Shown one piece after another: positions 33,360-43,460 of a stretch of DNA of 64,000 nt (its first letter is position 1; each line of letters opens with the position of its first letter). The stretch spans positions 1,302,001 to 1,366,000 of the forward strand of contig JBBPEB010000007.1 in the NCBI GenBank assembly GCA_039096225.1, in the 5' to 3' direction. Below the pieces are notes generated by a model that was given only the letters and a program-made list of their open reading frames with translations, did no database searches and had not been told where the DNA came from. The position numbers and the translations under genes were made by a program. Source of the stretch: Blastocystis sp. Blastoise. Taxonomy: Eukaryota > Protista > Bigyra: Opalinata.

Positions 33360-34294
33360 GCTGCTATTTTATGCAGCTTGATTATTTTATTTTAAAAATT
33401 TGTTTATATGTATTTTTTGCTGCTATTTTATGCAGCTTGATTATTTTATTTTAAAAATTTGTTTATATGTATTTTTTGCTGCTATTTTTGTGCAGCCTGA
33501 TTATTTTATTAAAAATTTGTTTATATGTATTTTTTTGCTGCTACTTTATGCAGCTTGATTATTTTATTAAAAATTTGTTTATATATATTTTTTGCTGCTT
33601 GTTTATGCAGCCTGATTATTTTTTTCTATAGTTGTTTATATATATATATTTTGCTGCTTTTTTATGCAGCTTGATTATTTTATTAAAAATTTGTTTATAT
33701 ATATTTTTTGCTGCTTGTTTATGCAGCCTGATTATTTTTTTCTATAGTTGTTTATATATATATATTTTGCTGCTTTTTTATGCAGCTTGATTATTTTATT
33801 AAAAATTTGTTTATATATATCTTTTGCTGCTTGTTTATGCAGCCTGATTATTTTAAAACTTTGTTTATATATACTTTTTGCTGCTTGTTTATGCAGCCTG
33901 ATTATTTTTTTCTATAGTTGTTTATATATATATCTTTTGCTGCTTTTTTATGCAGCTTGATTATTTTATTAAAAATTTGTTTATATATTTTATTGCTTCT
34001 ATTTTATGCAGCTTGATTATTTTATTAAAAATTTGTTTATATATTTTTTGCTGTTATTTTTGTGCAGCTTGATTATTTTATTAAAATTTGTTTATATATT
34101 TTTTGCTGCTATTTTTGTGCAGCCTGATTTTTTTTCTATAGTTTGTTTATATATTTTTTGCTGCTACTTTATGCAGCTTGATTATTTTATTAAAAATTTG
34201 TTTATATATATATATTTTTTTGCTGCTATTTTATGCAGCTTGAATTTTTGTTTATGTGTTTGATATTTTTTTTTTGCTGCTATTTTTCTGCAGC
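33360..34294. repeat. Tandem array of 17 units of ~54-62 bp, each with a GCTGC-N8/9-GCAGC inverted repeat
   Basis: Stems start at ~33360, 33419, 33478, 33537, 33594, 33653, 33710, 33769, 33826, 33880, 33939, 33995, 34050, 34105, 34160, 34222 and 34276. Two linker variants. Confidence 0.92.
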
Positions 34295-34711: not shown

Positions 34712-35960
34712 TTAGAGCATTGGTATTCCAAGAAGAGTATGTATATGATAATTATAAGAGGAACTGAGAGAGAGAATAGGTAGTAATTCAATGATATTGT
34801 TTTTGAGTATTTCTGTTTGTTGTTGATAGGATTCATGAATTGTGCATGAATATAGGATATTAAGAGTTATAAAGCAAATCATTTGACTTATTTCTTGAAG
34901 AATGGATGAATATTTCTGTTTATAGGATTGTTGTTCTAGGAAATGAATAAATGTGGGATATATATTCATAAATTCATTTAAATAATTAATAAGAAGTAAT
35001 ATATTATCTTGATTATTTGATGTGATAGGAATGGTGTGAATGGAATAATCGACTTGAGATAAGGAAAGATAAGTATCAAATAAAGTATTATATGTATTAT
35101 GTATGTAATAATAAAAGATAAAACCAGATAAACCCATCGAATTCCAAAAATGTAATTCTGTTTTATTAGAATCAATTTTATTCAGAATAGAGAGAAGATT
35201 ATTACTGTAGAATATCTTTTCTTTTTGAGTAAAAAATGAAAAATACTGAGGGATAGAAAACTGATAGATAATCTAAGAAATAAATGAATGATAATAATAT
35301 AGTTATTTAATAATTTATATAAGTATATATACTTGAGAAGCTTTTAAAAAGTTTTGTTGTAAGATATTCATGAATATTTCGGATAAATAATCGTGAATAT
35401 AATGATAATAAGAAGCTGCATGTGTATAAAATATATCTAGTTCAATATTTAAATTCTTAAATATATTTGTAAGTTTTACAATATCTTGTTTATATATATT
35501 AATATATTCACCTATATAAAGCGACAGTTGTGTATCTATGCACTCAATTCGTTTCTTAGGATCCTGAATGAAGGAAAGTATATATAACGGCATAATAAAA
35601 TCATCTATAAAGTATAATAAATATTATATTATGTTTAATAATAAGTATAATAATATGTTTAATGATAAGAAATATAATATGTTTAATGATAAGTATTATA
35701 ATATGTTTAATGATAAGAAATATAATATGTTTAATGATAAGTATAATAATATGTTTAATGATAAGAAATATAAATATAATAAGATATGTTTAATAATAAT
35801 AAATATAAATATATACTACGTAGGTTAAGTTGAAATATAAGTTCATTACTTATATAAATAGAACTCCATAAATCATTTGAATAAGAACGTAATGGATATA
35901 CAAGAGGAAGGAATGTATATATATACCAATTAAAAACAACTGATATATAGGAATCAGGAA

Positions 35961-36050
<90 letters not shown>

Positions 36051-36375
36051 CTGTTCATATTGAGGAATTGCTCCTTGTCACATGATAATTGGCCAATAAT
36101 TAGCAAGATGTTCCAAAGAGAATCATAATAATGAATAGAATCATCAATATTAGAAATATTTGAAAACAAAGGATTTGGAGTAGGATATAGAATAGCTTCA
36201 TTCCCGCGGTTATTCGATGAATTATAGGAATGATCCATATAATAATTAATAAGAGAAGTGAATGACGTGATATTAACATCTGGTGTATACCTATATATAT
36301 ATATATTTAGTTATATATATATATATACATATAGTAATAAAAAAATAATAATAAATAAATAAATAAATAAATGAA

Positions 36376-36411
<36 letters not shown>

Positions 36412-38461
36412 AAATAAATGAATAAATAAATAAATAAATAAATAAATACCAAAGAAGGAAAGAAAGTGCTTGAATATAGTTCATTCCTGTTAAACAGGAA
36501 ATACATTGATTTCTGTCAATAAATAGAGAATAAAAAATATAACGAGAGGAATTCGATATATCTAGAGGATTCGACTGAAAGTATTCTGAAAGTTGCTGAA
36601 TGACGGATGCGAAAACAAATGGAGAATCAACTATGTAATTAATTAATAATAAACAATATAATAATAAGAATAGTATAAAAATAGTATAATAATAATTATC
36701 TATAAGATTTTGTATTAAACGAATAATGATATATAGAAAATACATAATAAAGAGATAATAGATATTAATTGAGGATCTTCGTTAGCTTCTGTTAAGAATT
36801 GAATTGTATTCAGTACATCTCTTCTCAATAATGAGTAGAATGCTTTCATATATATATCTTGGTCATTAAATAAAGATGATGATAAAGGATAGAGAGAATA
36901 TGATATAGTAGTACTAGTAGTACTAGTAGTACTAGTAGAAGTATATTGTAAGATCGATTCTAAGAAGACAGAAAAGTTATATAGATCAAAGCTTTGGGTA
37001 CTTGGCCTATATATTATTATTAGAGAGAATAATCAATACTATATATATATATATATATACAAATTTATGGATTTCTTGTCCATTTGAATGAGAAGATTAA
37101 GAATAAAATGAACATATATAATAATCTCAATATGATCTCGTTGATCTATAATAATAACATGAATATAAGATAATATATTAAATAAAAAGAATAATAAAAA
37201 TAATATTAAAATAAAAATAATATAAAAGATATATAAAAATAAAAATGCAATTATATAAATATAAAAATAACAAAAACATATAAAAAAATAATATAAAATT
37301 AAAATAAATAAAAACACTATATACTCTGTTCAATAATATTTTGAATGTACATATCGATCTGTTGAATAATATTCATACATTGATTTTTTATGACTTCTTT
37401 AGTATCTATATCATTATGAATAGAAGAATAAGAAGATTTCAGAAGATCAAATAACCAACTGAAAATAGAATCATCAGATACAGAAGAGTTTCTTAATAAT
37501 AATTCATGTATATTATATATAGATAAAGAATTCTTTAAAGAAAAATCATTGAATTGATGTGTTTCAGTATAAGATATTTCTTTACTAGGAATAATGATAT
37601 TCCCTTGGGAATTCATAGAGGAACCAAATGAAAAATGATTATATAAAGAAATAGGATTTGAAGTATATTTTAAACTAATATTATTTTGTAACTTTGATTC
37701 TATCATTTTCATTGTATTAGACGAATGGTCTTGAGATTGTTCTGATTCTGTTTGATTAGAATCCATATAAAAACGAGAAGAAGGAGAAACAGATAATAAA
37801 TGGGTAAGTATTTTTTGATTAGACTTCTTATTGATAGTATTTGTATTATAATCTGTATTCTTTAAAATTGATTGTTTCATTATTTCAGAATTATCATAAT
37901 TATTATCTTCAGAAACAGATTCAGAAATCTTGTTTTCAGAAGATGTAAAACGAAATAAACTAAGTAATGTTTCATTTTGAAGATTTCGTTTATTTAATAC
38001 ATTAAATTCTATATTCTTATCATTCAATCCATTCGATCCCTCTTCATTACAAAAAGTACCTGGAGCAGGAACACAAGAAAACCTTAAATAATCATCTAAA
38101 ATAGATTTTGTAAAATCAATAGTATCTTGAATAGGACTCATCATTTTTTTATATTCTTCATTAACTTTAGATTCAATAGACAAACTGTCAGACATTGGAT
38201 GTTGTTGAAGAGAATCATTTGTTTCATAATCTATAATCAAATTAATATTCCTAAATAATTAATTAATTCTATACTTTTATCATATGATTCTTGCATGGTT
38301 AAATTGGTACAATTTGTATTTTGCTCAACACATTGATTTAGTGAAGTGTCTATAAGATATATAAGTACACAGTAATGTAATATATAGTATATAATAAAAA
38401 TACTATGATCCAAGATCGGTAAATCATGTCTTCCAGAAGAAGAGTTGCTTATCATATCCAT
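34712..38461 (-). CDS. NUP96: Nup96 (Nup145C-like) nucleoporin, separate ORF, multi-exon
   Basis: Helical C-terminal domain with Nup96-like pattern: [78 protein letters not shown]. Lies directly downstream of Nup98. Start codon inferred. Confidence 0.75.
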
Positions 38462-38937
38462 AATTGTTTGAAAATAGAATATTCTAATGATCCCTATATC
38501 TATATATGACTGAGATAGATATAAGTGAATTGTTTATGATGAGAAATAAGTAATAGTTTATACTTTGTTGGCAAACAATGAATTGTTTTTTCTTTTTAAA
38601 AATAAACGCTTCTGTATCAGTTTATTCGTGGAAATTACATAGATTTAAAAAGAAATGTTTTTATAGAATTAAATGACTATTAGAAATAAATATTACAGTT
38701 TTAAATAGTATTTCTATGTATGGACAACTTTTGCTAATATACAGAGATGAACGAAACAAGTAAATAAAAAATTCAAAAATAATTAAAAAAAAGATATATT
38801 AATAATGTTAATAAAAGATGATAATAAAATAAAAGATCATGAATAATTATATAAAGAATAAAAATAAAAACAATTTGGAAATAAGTTTAGTAGAGAATAT
38901 TTTAGAATAAAATATGAAAATTTCTTTTATAGCAAAT

Positions 38938-40163
38938 TTAGAAATGATCAATAGTGAAACACCAAATTTGTTCTTCTTCATCGAAGCTTAAGAAAGTAGC
39001 CATTTGGTCTTTGCAATAATCTTGAAGGAATTGAGTTTGAGTTTTTCCTTTTAAAACGGATTCCGATAAAGGAGTGGTATGGAGAACCAAAGTACATTTG
39101 GTATTCAATTTTTTACCATTTTCAGGATAATCTGATTCTTTATATGTAGGATAAAGCTATATAAATGATAATTATACATGATATTAATGATTTATAATAA
39201 TAATATAAAATTTATAATAAAAATAATAAAATTTATAATAAAAATAATAGAATTTATAATAAATATATATACAGTAACAATAGGAATGCCTTGTTGATTT
39301 TTTGAGAATACAATATCTTTATCGATATTGAGATCTCTAACATCGACGTGTTCTTGCCATTCAATAGATCCAAATTCAGGATTTTCGACTTTAAAAGGGT
39401 AAATATCCGAGAGTTGAAGATCATTCATAGATTGTAATTTAGATAATGAAGGAGTAATAACGAGATTTGGCATATAAGAAACAGGAGCATGAATATTAGT
39501 AGAGAGAGGAGAAGAAATAGAAGCGGCTTTAGGAGAGGAAGGAGAGGAAGGAGCTATAGGAGAGGAAGGAGAAGAAGAAGAAGGAGAAGAAGAAGAAGAA
39601 GAAGGAGAAACATGAGATGGAGAGAGCATATAATCATCTATAAAATATATAAATAAATATAAATATAAATAAATAATAAATAAAAAATTAAAATAAAAAA
39701 AAAATAAATAAATAAAAAGATCACAATAATAATTGATATATACTAGGAATATTATAGATTTGAAGACAGTCATTATCTGAAATATTATAATCACGGAGAG
39801 TTTTCTTATTATTAAGAGAATGATTGTCAAATGAAAGAACTACAGACTCAGGAGAAGAACAAATTATACCCTATATATATATAATAATAATGAATAAATA
39901 ATATTAATAATAAAAATAATAATAAGTAATATTAAAAATAATAAATAAATAATATAAATAGTAAAAATAATAATGAATAGAATTACATTGACTTCTAAGT
40001 AAAGAGTTTTGATGGCAAGAACAGTATCTAATTCATAGCATTTAATTGTAGTTGTCTGATTTCCATTAATAACAATAATAGAAAGAGCCTATATATAAAA
40101 AGAACAATAGAAATAAAAGAAAAATAATTTGAGTAATATAATGTGAATAACAAGTATAATATA

Positions 40164-40225
<62 letters not shown>

Positions 40226-43200
40226 TTTAGGAATATCACTTGTTTCTGAAATAACATCCTTTGAATTAGCAACAGGTTTATTCGATAATAATTGTAATAT
40301 ATCTTTACGAATAACAATAGAATCACGAATAACAAGATCCTTAGGATTCTTCATAAGATTTCCTGATGTCATATAACGACCTGGTTTATAGAAATTATCT
40401 CCAAGGGAAAAGGGTACCATACCATCAGAGTAATTTCCATGAGAAATTGAACTACGAGAAATAGGATTTTTTGGTTTAATTTTCGCATGATCTTTATTAT
40501 CAACAGGAGAAGCAGAGGATTGAATTAATATATAGATATATATATATATATGTTAAACATAAAGAATATATATTGATTTAAAAGAAACATAAAGAATAGC
40601 AATAAGACAAGTATAATGATATTTTTTATTACTATTAATATATATATATATATAAATAATAAAAATAATTAGTGACACAAATAAAAGACATACATATATT
40701 CATTGTATTATTACGAATTGCATTAAGTTTACCATCAATTTGAATCATATCAGCAAAATCATTTGAAAGAGGAGGAACTTCTATAGAGATTCAATGATAT
40801 AGAATAAGGATTCAATATATATATATATAGATATATACGAGTATTATTATTATTAGCACCTTGTTGATTCCAATTCATACCACCATTAGTACCAAAACCA
40901 GTTGAAGTACCAAAACCACTAGTACCAAACCCACTAGTTCCAAATCCAGTTGTTGCAGGTTTATTAGTACCAAATCCACTAGTACCAAAACCACTAGTAC
41001 CAAATCCAGTAGTAGTATTAGTACCAAATCCAGTAGTACCAGTAGTACCAAATCCAGTAGTACCTGTAGTTCCAAATCCAGTTGTACCAGTAGTACCAAA
41101 TCCAGTTGTACCAGTAGTACCAAATCCAGTTGTACCAGTGGTACCAAATCCAGTTGAAGTACCAAATCCAGTGGTTGCAGGTTTATTAGTACCAAAGCCA
41201 GTAGTACCTGTTGTACCAAAACCAGTAGTATTAGTACCAAAACCAGTGGTTGCAGGTTTATTAGTTCCAAAACCAGTTGTACCAAAACCAGTAGTACCAG
41301 TAGTATTAGTACCAAATCCAGTAGTACCAGTAGTATTAGTACCAAAACCAGTAGTACCTGTTGTACCAAATCCAGTAGTACCAGTAGTATTAGTACCAAA
41401 ACCAGTAGTACCAGTGGTACCAAATCCAGTAGTACCAGTGGTACCAAAACCAGTAGTACCAGTAGTACCAAAACCTGTAGTATTAGTACCAAAACCAGTA
41501 GTTGCAGGTTTATTAGTTCCAAAACCAGTAGTACCAAAACCAGTAGTAGTATTAGTACCAAAACCAGTAGTACCAGTAGTATTAGTACCAAATCCAGTAG
41601 TACCTGTTGTACCAAATCCAGTAGTACCTGTTGTACCAAATCCAGTAGTACCTGTTGTACCAAATCCAGTAGTATTAGTACCAAAACCAGTAGTAGTATT
41701 ATTAGTAGCACCAAATCCAGTAGTATTACCGAATCCAGTAACAGCAGTAGTATTAGTACCAAATCCAGTTGTATTAGTACCAAAACCAGTAGTACCACTA
41801 GTATTAGTACCAAAACCAGTAGTATTACCGAATCCAGTAGTACCAGTAGTATTAGTAGCACCAAATCCAGTAGTATTACCAAAACCAGTAGTATTACCAA
41901 ATCCAGTAACAGCAGTAGTTGCTATATATAAAGATAATAATATAGATAGGATTATATATATATGATAGAAAACATACGTTGTTGTTGAGTGAGAGCAGGA
42001 TTAGCATTCTAGAGAGAAAAATAAGTTTTATATATAATGTATAATAAAAATAAATAAAAAATGAATAATAAAATAATAAAAAAATTTGATTATTAAATAG
42101 GAAAAATAAATATATATAAATTAAGATTATTACATACACATTTCTTATTGGCAATATAATCAGCCATACGTATTTCTAAAATTGTTTTATCTTTATAATC
42201 AGGCATAGCACAAAGAGAGCAATAATGAACATTTTCTTTTCCTTCATTCTATAGAGTAGATATAATTAGTAAATAATAAAACATATCAATCGTAAAATAA
42301 TTAATATAATTATTCGAATAGAATAGTAATAACATTGATAATTACATACTTTAATAGTTTCTTTATAAACAGTTGTTGTACCAGGTTGAGAACTGGTACC
42401 AAAACCAGTATTAGTAGCACCAAAACCAGTATTAGTAGCACCAAAACCAGTTGTATTACCAAAACCAGTAGTATTACCAAAACCAGTTGAAGTATTATTA
42501 GTATTACCAAAACCAGTTGTATTACCGAATCCAGTAACAGCAGTAGTATTAGTAGCACCAAATCCAGTTGTATTACCAAATCCAGTAGTATTACCAAATC
42601 CAGTAGTATTACCAAATCCAGTAGTATTACCAAATCCAGTACCAGCAGTAGTATTAGTAGCACCAAAACCAGTAGTATTAGTAGCACCAAAACCAGTAGT
42701 ATTAGTAGCACCAAAACCAGTAGTATTACCGAATCCAGTACCAGTATTAGTAGCACCGAATCCAGTAACAGCAGTAGTATTAGTAGCACCAAAACCATTA
42801 GGATTACCGAATCCAGTACCAGTAGTATTAGTAGCTCCGAATCCAGTATTAGTAGCACCGAATCCAGTATTAGTAGCACCGAATCCAGTATTGTTAGTAG
42901 CACCAAATCCTGTTGTAGTTTTTGATGCACCAAAATTAGTTGTTGTACCAAAAGTAGATTTAGGTTTATTACCAAAACCTGTTGCCTATATAAATAATAA
43001 AAATAAATATTTGAGAAAAAGTAGAGTATAAGATTTTATAAATGCATATATTTTGTGAATTCTATTATATATTAATAAGAAAATAAATATTTACGTTGTT
43101 ACCAAATAAATTCGTAGAGGAAGCTGTATTAAAAGGATTAGTTACACCAAATCCTGAAGTTGATCCAAAGCCAGTACCAGCATTATTTCCAAATCCAGTT

Positions 43201-43460
43201 GAACCACCAAAACCACTATATATATAAAGAATAATGATTATGAAAAATGAATATAAAAATATTACGTTGATTGATTATTGTTTCCAAATGAAGACGGGTT
43301 AGCTGCATTATTCTATATATATATGGATGATAGAAACAAAAAAAACTATCAAATAAATGAAAAACTTACAGTACCAAAACCGTTGTTATTACCAAAAGAG
43401 TTTCCTAGATATAGATATAGACATAGTGTTGATTTTATATTAGATTAGCATACCGAACAT
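38938..43460 (-). CDS. NUP98: Nup98 FG nucleoporin (FG repeats, GLEBS, ubiquitin-like insert, autoproteolytic-type domain ending HF*)
   Basis: MFG start and dozens of TGFG repeats. GLEBS (SLCAMPDYKDKTILEIRMADY). Nucleoporin2 domain (PSLSKLQSM...FGSIEW..VDVRDLNID...YPENGKKLN...FLSFD....IWCFTIDHF*). Confidence 0.95.

Follow-up and report, generated by a model that had tools for sequence, protein, structure and literature searches.

The 64,000-nucleotide stretch of Blastocystis sp. Blastoise DNA analyzed here (contig JBBPEB010000007.1, positions 1,302,001 to 1,366,000, hereafter the window) is eukaryotic in composition, with 25% G+C and many short introns, and carries a gene for the nucleoporin Nup98 followed directly by a candidate gene for Nup96. 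In the canonical precursor (human NUP98-NUP96, S. cerevisiae Nup145, S. pombe Nup189) the modules come in the same order, namely FG repeats, a peptidase S59 domain ending in His-Phe and then Nup96, but they form one open reading frame (ORF) whose product is cut post-translationally at HF|S, whereas in this isolate the Ser position is taken by a stop codon, and the Nup96 candidate starts at an ATG of its own behind a 476-bp spacer. Coordinates below are those of the window, and all elements of the two genes and of their junction lie on the reverse strand (-). The organism is a tortoise isolate, and the genomes of tortoise-derived Blastocystis have been described as at most 33.3 Mb in size and very AT-rich, with longer introns and canonical stop codons (Lind et al., Genome Res 2025, PMC12129017). 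These assemblies were built from Nanopore reads, polished four times with racon and three times with Polypolish on Illumina data, and annotated with RNA-seq support (PMC12129017).

The N-terminal region of Nup98 is encoded by several exons located approximately at 40870..43450, whose frame translations hold long TGFGT/NTTGFG runs and which include an uninterrupted 341-residue ORF at 40875-41900. This FG domain (about 43400-40870) is composed of Thr-rich TGFG, NTTGFG and GFG repeats and not of GLFG repeats. The S59 domain follows in two exons. Searching the Nup98 exons one by one against Pfam, we matched the first half of the domain (39273..39461) to positions 5-62 of the PF04096 profile (Nucleoporin2, peptidase S59) with 36.1 bits (E 8.8e-9), and the second half, which constitutes the last coding exon (38941..39156), to positions 68-143 out of 148 with 33.1 bits. 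Both scores exceed the Pfam gathering cut-off of 28.4 bits, and a six-frame search of the organism's own genome (33.34 Mb, 34 contigs) agrees with them and returns no S59 copy other than these two exon matches. At 39273 the first S59 exon terminates in phase 0, and the donor GTATATAT comes next. The 116-bp intron (39157..39272, GTAT...TAG) is in phase 0 on both sides, and position 62 of the profile meets position 68 at this boundary.

The last exon ends with ...EEEQIWCFTIDHF, which gives the C-terminus ...IWCFTIDHF, and the PF04096 match extends up to the final HF. In a search of solved structures, ...TIDHF was aligned to its final residue with the Chaetomium thermophilum Nup145N chain 5cww_A, which ends ...VWAFSVEHF, this end being the mature C-terminus produced by autoproteolysis; the C. 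glabrata Nup116 domain was also among the matches of this exon. Directly behind the Phe codon, a TAA stop (38938..38940) occupies the place of the nucleophilic Ser/Thr codon of HF|S, the assembly reading CATTTCTAAATTT at 38946-38934 (-). No Ser or Thr follows His-Phe in frame, and a Ser codon, TCT, occurs out of frame only. Direct reading and the S59 matches therefore bear out the claim, made in an earlier reading of the sequence alone, that Nup98 ends ...WCFTIDHF before TAA, and confirm that the predicted protein terminates at the same residue where other eukaryotes cleave. Any autoproteolytic activity of this S59 domain would have nothing downstream left to cleave.

That sequence-only reading had also proposed that no GT donor could skip the stop and keep HF, and this holds. 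The final GT dinucleotides of the last Nup98 exon lie at 38962 and 38960, both upstream of the CFTIDHF codons and neither of them part of a GTA; because there is no GT past 38960 and the local introns all start with GTAT, neither a canonical nor a U12-type donor can remove the stop while keeping HF. Skipping of the last exon gives no in-frame fusion either, since a phase-0 end of the first S59 exon would have to be joined to exon 2 or 3 of the downstream gene, both of which start in phase 1. Read-through of the stop reaches another one within 12 codons, and the spacer between the Nup98 stop and the downstream ATG (38462..38937, 19% GC) contains from 6 to 12 stops per frame, among which an in-frame TAA at 38536-38534 precedes the ATG. 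A single ORF across Nup98 and Nup96 is thus absent, with a stop at the junction, a spacer closed in every frame, no bypassing splice and no second copy of either half anywhere in the genome. The spacer presumably comprises the 3' untranslated region (UTR) of Nup98 and, for the downstream gene, its promoter and 5' UTR. Its measured length of 476 bp agrees with the distance of about 480 bp anticipated for a Nup96 start on the same strand.

The downstream gene (34712..38461) runs from an ATG at 38461 to a TAA at 34714-34712 and comprises 10 exons, established by exact spliced mapping of a 920-residue protein: 38461-38404, 38349-38275, 38230-37325, 37145-37061 and 37006-36744 for exons 1-5, and 36630-36450, 36290-36052, 35939-35817, 35604-35333 and 35272-34715 for exons 6-10. 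All nine introns start with GTAT and end with TAG or CAG. They measure 44-212 bp and contain 9.5% G+C as against 26% in the exons, and long microsatellites of the (TA)n or TTTA type occur in several of them (e.g., 36050-35960). The product is deposited at the NCBI as hypothetical protein WA158_007331 [Blastocystis sp. Blastoise] and stands as a gene model of its own in the RNA-seq-supported annotation; the gene is single copy in the genome. Its N-terminus reads MDMISN..., the protein carries no S59 domain, and no SK[FY]/SKYGL-type motif was seen in its first 120 residues.

This protein is probably Nup96, as judged from its Pfam match, its ACE1-type neighbors in a language-model search, its size and its position directly after the Nup98 S59 domain. 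Searched both as exons and as the complete 920 residues, it matches the Nup96 profile PF12110 in its whole form, residues 429-707 covering profile positions 2-293 out of 295 (E 8e-5, 22.3 bits), and Nup96 is the sole Pfam family reported for it even at E up to 10; single exons matched no Pfam family at all in the Pfam scan, and no Nup96 signal was obtained with PF12110 from the six-frame search of the own genome. With residues 330-920, the language-model search returned 30 hits with scores of 0.91-0.95, all of them ACE1-type scaffold nucleoporins (Nup85 19, Nic96 10 and Nup84 1). Nup96 belongs to the same ACE1 fold class. Elsewhere in the genome, the contig of the window (contig 29) also carries a clear Nic96/Nup93 homolog (PF04097, 43.3 bits) at 517572-519714, some 0.8 Mb away, and a candidate Nup85, a 231-residue exon with a weak PF07575 match (16.5 bits, E 0.003), lies at 475448-475615 of contig 13, where it adjoins an Hsp70-like gene.

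The human precursor continues after His-Phe with S-K-Y-G-L-Q-D. At the Blastocystis junction, a closely similar peptide can be read one base out of frame, in that TCT AAA TTT GCT ATA AAA GAA (38922..38942), which overlaps the Phe and stop codons, translates as S-K-F-A-I-K-E. The likeness of an off-frame K-F-A-I to the usual S-K-Y-G-L had been pointed out from the sequence alone; it is upheld here and extends over seven residues, 7/7 positions of SKFAIKE and SKYGLQD being identical or conservative. Moreover, the pattern SK[FY][GA][LIVM] occurs once in the six frames of the 64-kb window, at this very junction, and a BLOSUM62 score of at least 17 against SKYGLQD is reached at only 11 of the 127,960 six-frame positions of the window (8.6e-5), which, given a handful of admissible positions and two frames, puts the chance of such a remnant at about 1 in 1,000 or less. 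On this sequence comparison, the SKFAIKE remnant is real and improbable as a chance event. It also fits a 2-bp deletion at the Ser codon, since the removal of two bases from CAT TTC TCT AAA or from CAT TTT TCT AAA yields exactly the CATTTCTAAA that is observed. The remainder of the shifted frame (38847..38921) has 15% GC and runs up to a TAA, for 31 open codons in total, and by its composition this tail looks non-coding. Its openness was considered as a sign of coding and ruled out, 31 open codons being expected about once in 6 cases with 27 stops in the 474 codons of the spacer.

One further feature of the S59 domain may be connected with the loss of the cleavage site. Lys and Asn residues eight positions apart have been given as catalytic in S59 domains (Entamoeba preprint). 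In one pairwise alignment with the Chaetomium domain, the Asn is retained (GKKLN versus GKGLN), whereas the position eight residues before it is a Tyr in Blastocystis in place of the second K of the Chaetomium KKPP (SDYPENGKKLN, encoded at 39156-39100 (-), versus KKPPMGKGLN). This change from Lys to Tyr may reflect relaxed constraint on catalysis after self-cleavage was lost.

Taken together, we consider it likely that Nup98 and Nup96 are encoded in this tortoise-derived Blastocystis by two separate, adjacent genes on the same strand, with a stop at HF produced by a 2-bp deletion and a remnant of the former junction in the 3' UTR. Nup98 would be translated straight to a free C-terminal His-Phe, that is, to the same end that others make by S59 autoproteolysis of HF|S; with a stop as the nucleophile codon, self-cleavage would be neither needed nor possible, and the S59 fold would be kept, presumably for docking to the pore. 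Nup96 would be made from a message and an ATG of its own, devoid of both the S59 domain and an SKYGL-type N-terminus. Most likely, the stop was created when an ancestral ...HF-S-K-F-A-I-K-E... lost two bases within the Ser codon or beside it, a change that would have left S-K-F-A-I-K-E behind in the 3' UTR, out of frame. The loss would have been nearly neutral because the mature Nup98 is unchanged by it. Indeed, no truncation other than a stop exactly at the Ser codon spares mature Nup98, so that this stop could be fixed by drift once the tail had become functionless. The ancestral gene may have encoded either the complete fusion or only Nup98 followed by a short tail. Since the Nup96 candidate does not carry an SKYGL-type motif, the non-covalent tether between Nup98 and Nup96 may have been lost or altered.

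The earlier proposal that the gene encodes the cleaved product directly is accordingly supported as to the His-Phe end, which aligns with the mature end of Nup145N, and as to a separate downstream gene with no fused copy, while the Nup96 half of the proposal is less firm, its profile match of 22.3 bits standing under the Pfam gathering cut-off of 25 bits. Several other observations also count against the interpretation given above. The language-model search ranks Nup85-type clusters first and has no Nup96 cluster among its 30 hits, a sequence search of solved structures with the whole 920-residue protein gave only noise, with no Nup96/Nup145C relative, and a single-sequence AlphaFold model of residues 330-920, while all-helical, is unreliable (pLDDT 37). 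In addition, the human peptide against which the remnant was scored was picked after the match had been seen. Finally, no relative of either protein was retrieved, so that the ancestral state is deduced from distant eukaryotes only. For the downstream protein, a HMMER search with the C-terminal 186 residues against 1.84 billion representatives gave the protein itself and one unrelated repeat protein, and two word searches, one of the whole protein and one of residues 400-920, gave the protein itself or nothing. Two metagenome scans brought no relative either, and a protein atlas search with the last exon gave no useful match.

These points leave some room for the downstream gene to encode another ACE1-type scaffold nucleoporin, for example a Nup85 relative, or an unrelated helical protein, in which case the ancestral gene order would be coincidental and Nup98 would simply stand alone. 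While the subthreshold profile score, the language-model neighbors and the want of a match to solved Nup96/Nup145C chains all speak for it, we find it rather unlikely. The Nup96 family is the only one that Pfam offers, with the whole profile covered; in most organisms Nup96 occurs solely as part of a long fusion, a possible reason for its absence from the atlas clusters; the weak Nup85-like exon is on a different contig and Nic96 is found elsewhere; a protein of 920 residues following the S59 domain is what Nup96 predicts; and the SKFAIKE remnant shows that coding once ran past HF. The same remnant can be turned into an argument for a 2-bp assembly or consensus error, the true gene then reading HF-S-K-F-A-I-K-E with a tail of 31 residues that autoproteolysis continues to remove, and Nup96 being a separate gene all the same. 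A near-canonical SKFAIKE directly after HF in a shifted frame that stays open for 31 codons, a Nanopore-based assembly at a very AT-rich locus and the existence of short cleaved tails elsewhere (the human and S. pombe Nup98-only isoforms and the stand-alone Entamoeba protein) are all compatible with such an error. However, the assembly was polished with both racon and Illumina data, and fixation of a nearly neutral mutation at this exact codon is far more likely than a residual 2-bp mistake there; the tail has the look of non-coding DNA, with no significance in its open length; and the Tyr at the position of the Lys given as catalytic hints at relaxed constraint on catalysis. We hence regard an error as quite unlikely. 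It is highly improbable that a joined Nup98-Nup96 is still produced by recoding, whether by read-through, by a ribosomal frameshift at TTC-TAA-A or by an unconventional splice. While a +1 shift at the stop does enter the KFAIKE frame, it leaves out the Ser nucleophile and meets a stop some 30 codons on, read-through is halted by the stops counted above, no donor site is available, and stop codons are canonical in tortoise isolates (PMC12129017).

Several known systems can be compared with the two-gene arrangement favored here. The mature Nup98 of the canonical precursor ends at the residue homologous to the end of Blastocystis Nup98. An experimental parallel comes from S. pombe, whose cells survive when Nup98 and Nup96 are expressed at separate loci, while an uncleavable Nup98 tail is lethal (Asakawa et al. 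2015, PMC4483485). The lethality of such a tail would explain why a stop exactly at HF is tolerated. The engineered S. pombe strain likewise synthesizes both proteins separately and without cleavage; it is, however, a laboratory construct, whereas the isolate studied here has a natural tandem at the ancestral locus with a remnant of the junction. In the Nup98-only splice isoforms of human and S. pombe, and in the Nup98-like protein of Entamoeba histolytica (HFT), Nup98 is similarly not joined to Nup96, yet these stand-alone proteins retain HF-S/T with a tail of about 30-60 residues and self-process, while the Blastocystis protein has nothing to cleave.

Plants were also considered as a simple precedent for the split, Nup98a/b and Nup96 of Arabidopsis being likewise products of different genes, and were rejected as such because Arabidopsis Nup96 keeps an autoproteolytic domain of its own at the N-terminus, which it removes to mature (PMC13370221), unlike the Blastocystis Nup96 candidate with no S59 domain at all. 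In Trypanosoma brucei, Nup158 is an uncleaved Nup98-Nup96 fusion in which cleavage was lost by staying fused, an outcome opposite to that of Blastocystis, and in Tetrahymena MicNup98B-Nup96 is a single transcription unit, its parts being joined at the gene level unlike those described here. Among the nucleoporins of S. cerevisiae, Nup100 and Nup116 stand alone as GLFG proteins that have a C-terminal domain of the S59 fold and no Nup96 part. These two are extra paralogs beside the cleaving Nup145, whereas in the present isolate it is the only S59 gene of the genome that has lost the site. In the open-access literature, we came across no lineage in which the sole Nup98 gene stops at His-Phe and an S59-less Nup96 gene lies directly downstream.

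It is an old question why most eukaryotes make Nup98 and Nup96 as a single precursor that cleaves itself. Here, a stop codon appears, from the arrangement of the locus, to have replaced an ancient self-processing step, and we lean toward the view that the sole Nup98-Nup96 gene of this lineage broke naturally at the autoproteolytic bond, so that an encoded stop now yields His-Phe, the S59 domain serves only as a docking module whose catalytic residues are possibly decaying, and the old junction is still legible as SKFAIKE. The arrangement would then be the natural counterpart of the separate-loci experiment in S. pombe. A stop at the same residue, with the genes still adjacent, argues that it is the free His-Phe end of Nup98 that matters, and not co-synthesis or equal stoichiometry. 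Experiments are at odds over the need for Nup98-Nup96 cleavage, which is required for localization in human cells and dispensable in yeasts (PMC4483485), and our interpretation, if true, would support the view that it serves mainly to free the Nup98 C-terminus. It would also show, in an example that can be dated, gene structure taking over from a post-translational processing step, and the Blastocystis S59 domain would become a system for asking whether catalytic residues decay once unused. Furthermore, both genes, which are unnamed or hypothetical in the public annotation, can now be named.

Sequences past the two coding regions present additional features. TGTTTCGTT occurs at 38758-38750 (-), about 180 nt past the Nup98 stop, and TGTTTAGTT at 34660-34652 (-), about 55 nt past the stop of the downstream gene. 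While TGTTTTGTT-like 9-mers with at most one mismatch are over-represented in the window (89 versus 34 expected), the motif was rejected as a marker of 3' ends because the genome paper finds no enrichment of its core at 3' ends in tortoise isolates (PMC12129017). Just past the 3' end of the Nup96 candidate, a tandem repeat array extends over 33360-34294, and its translations repeat KIIKLHK.AAK.

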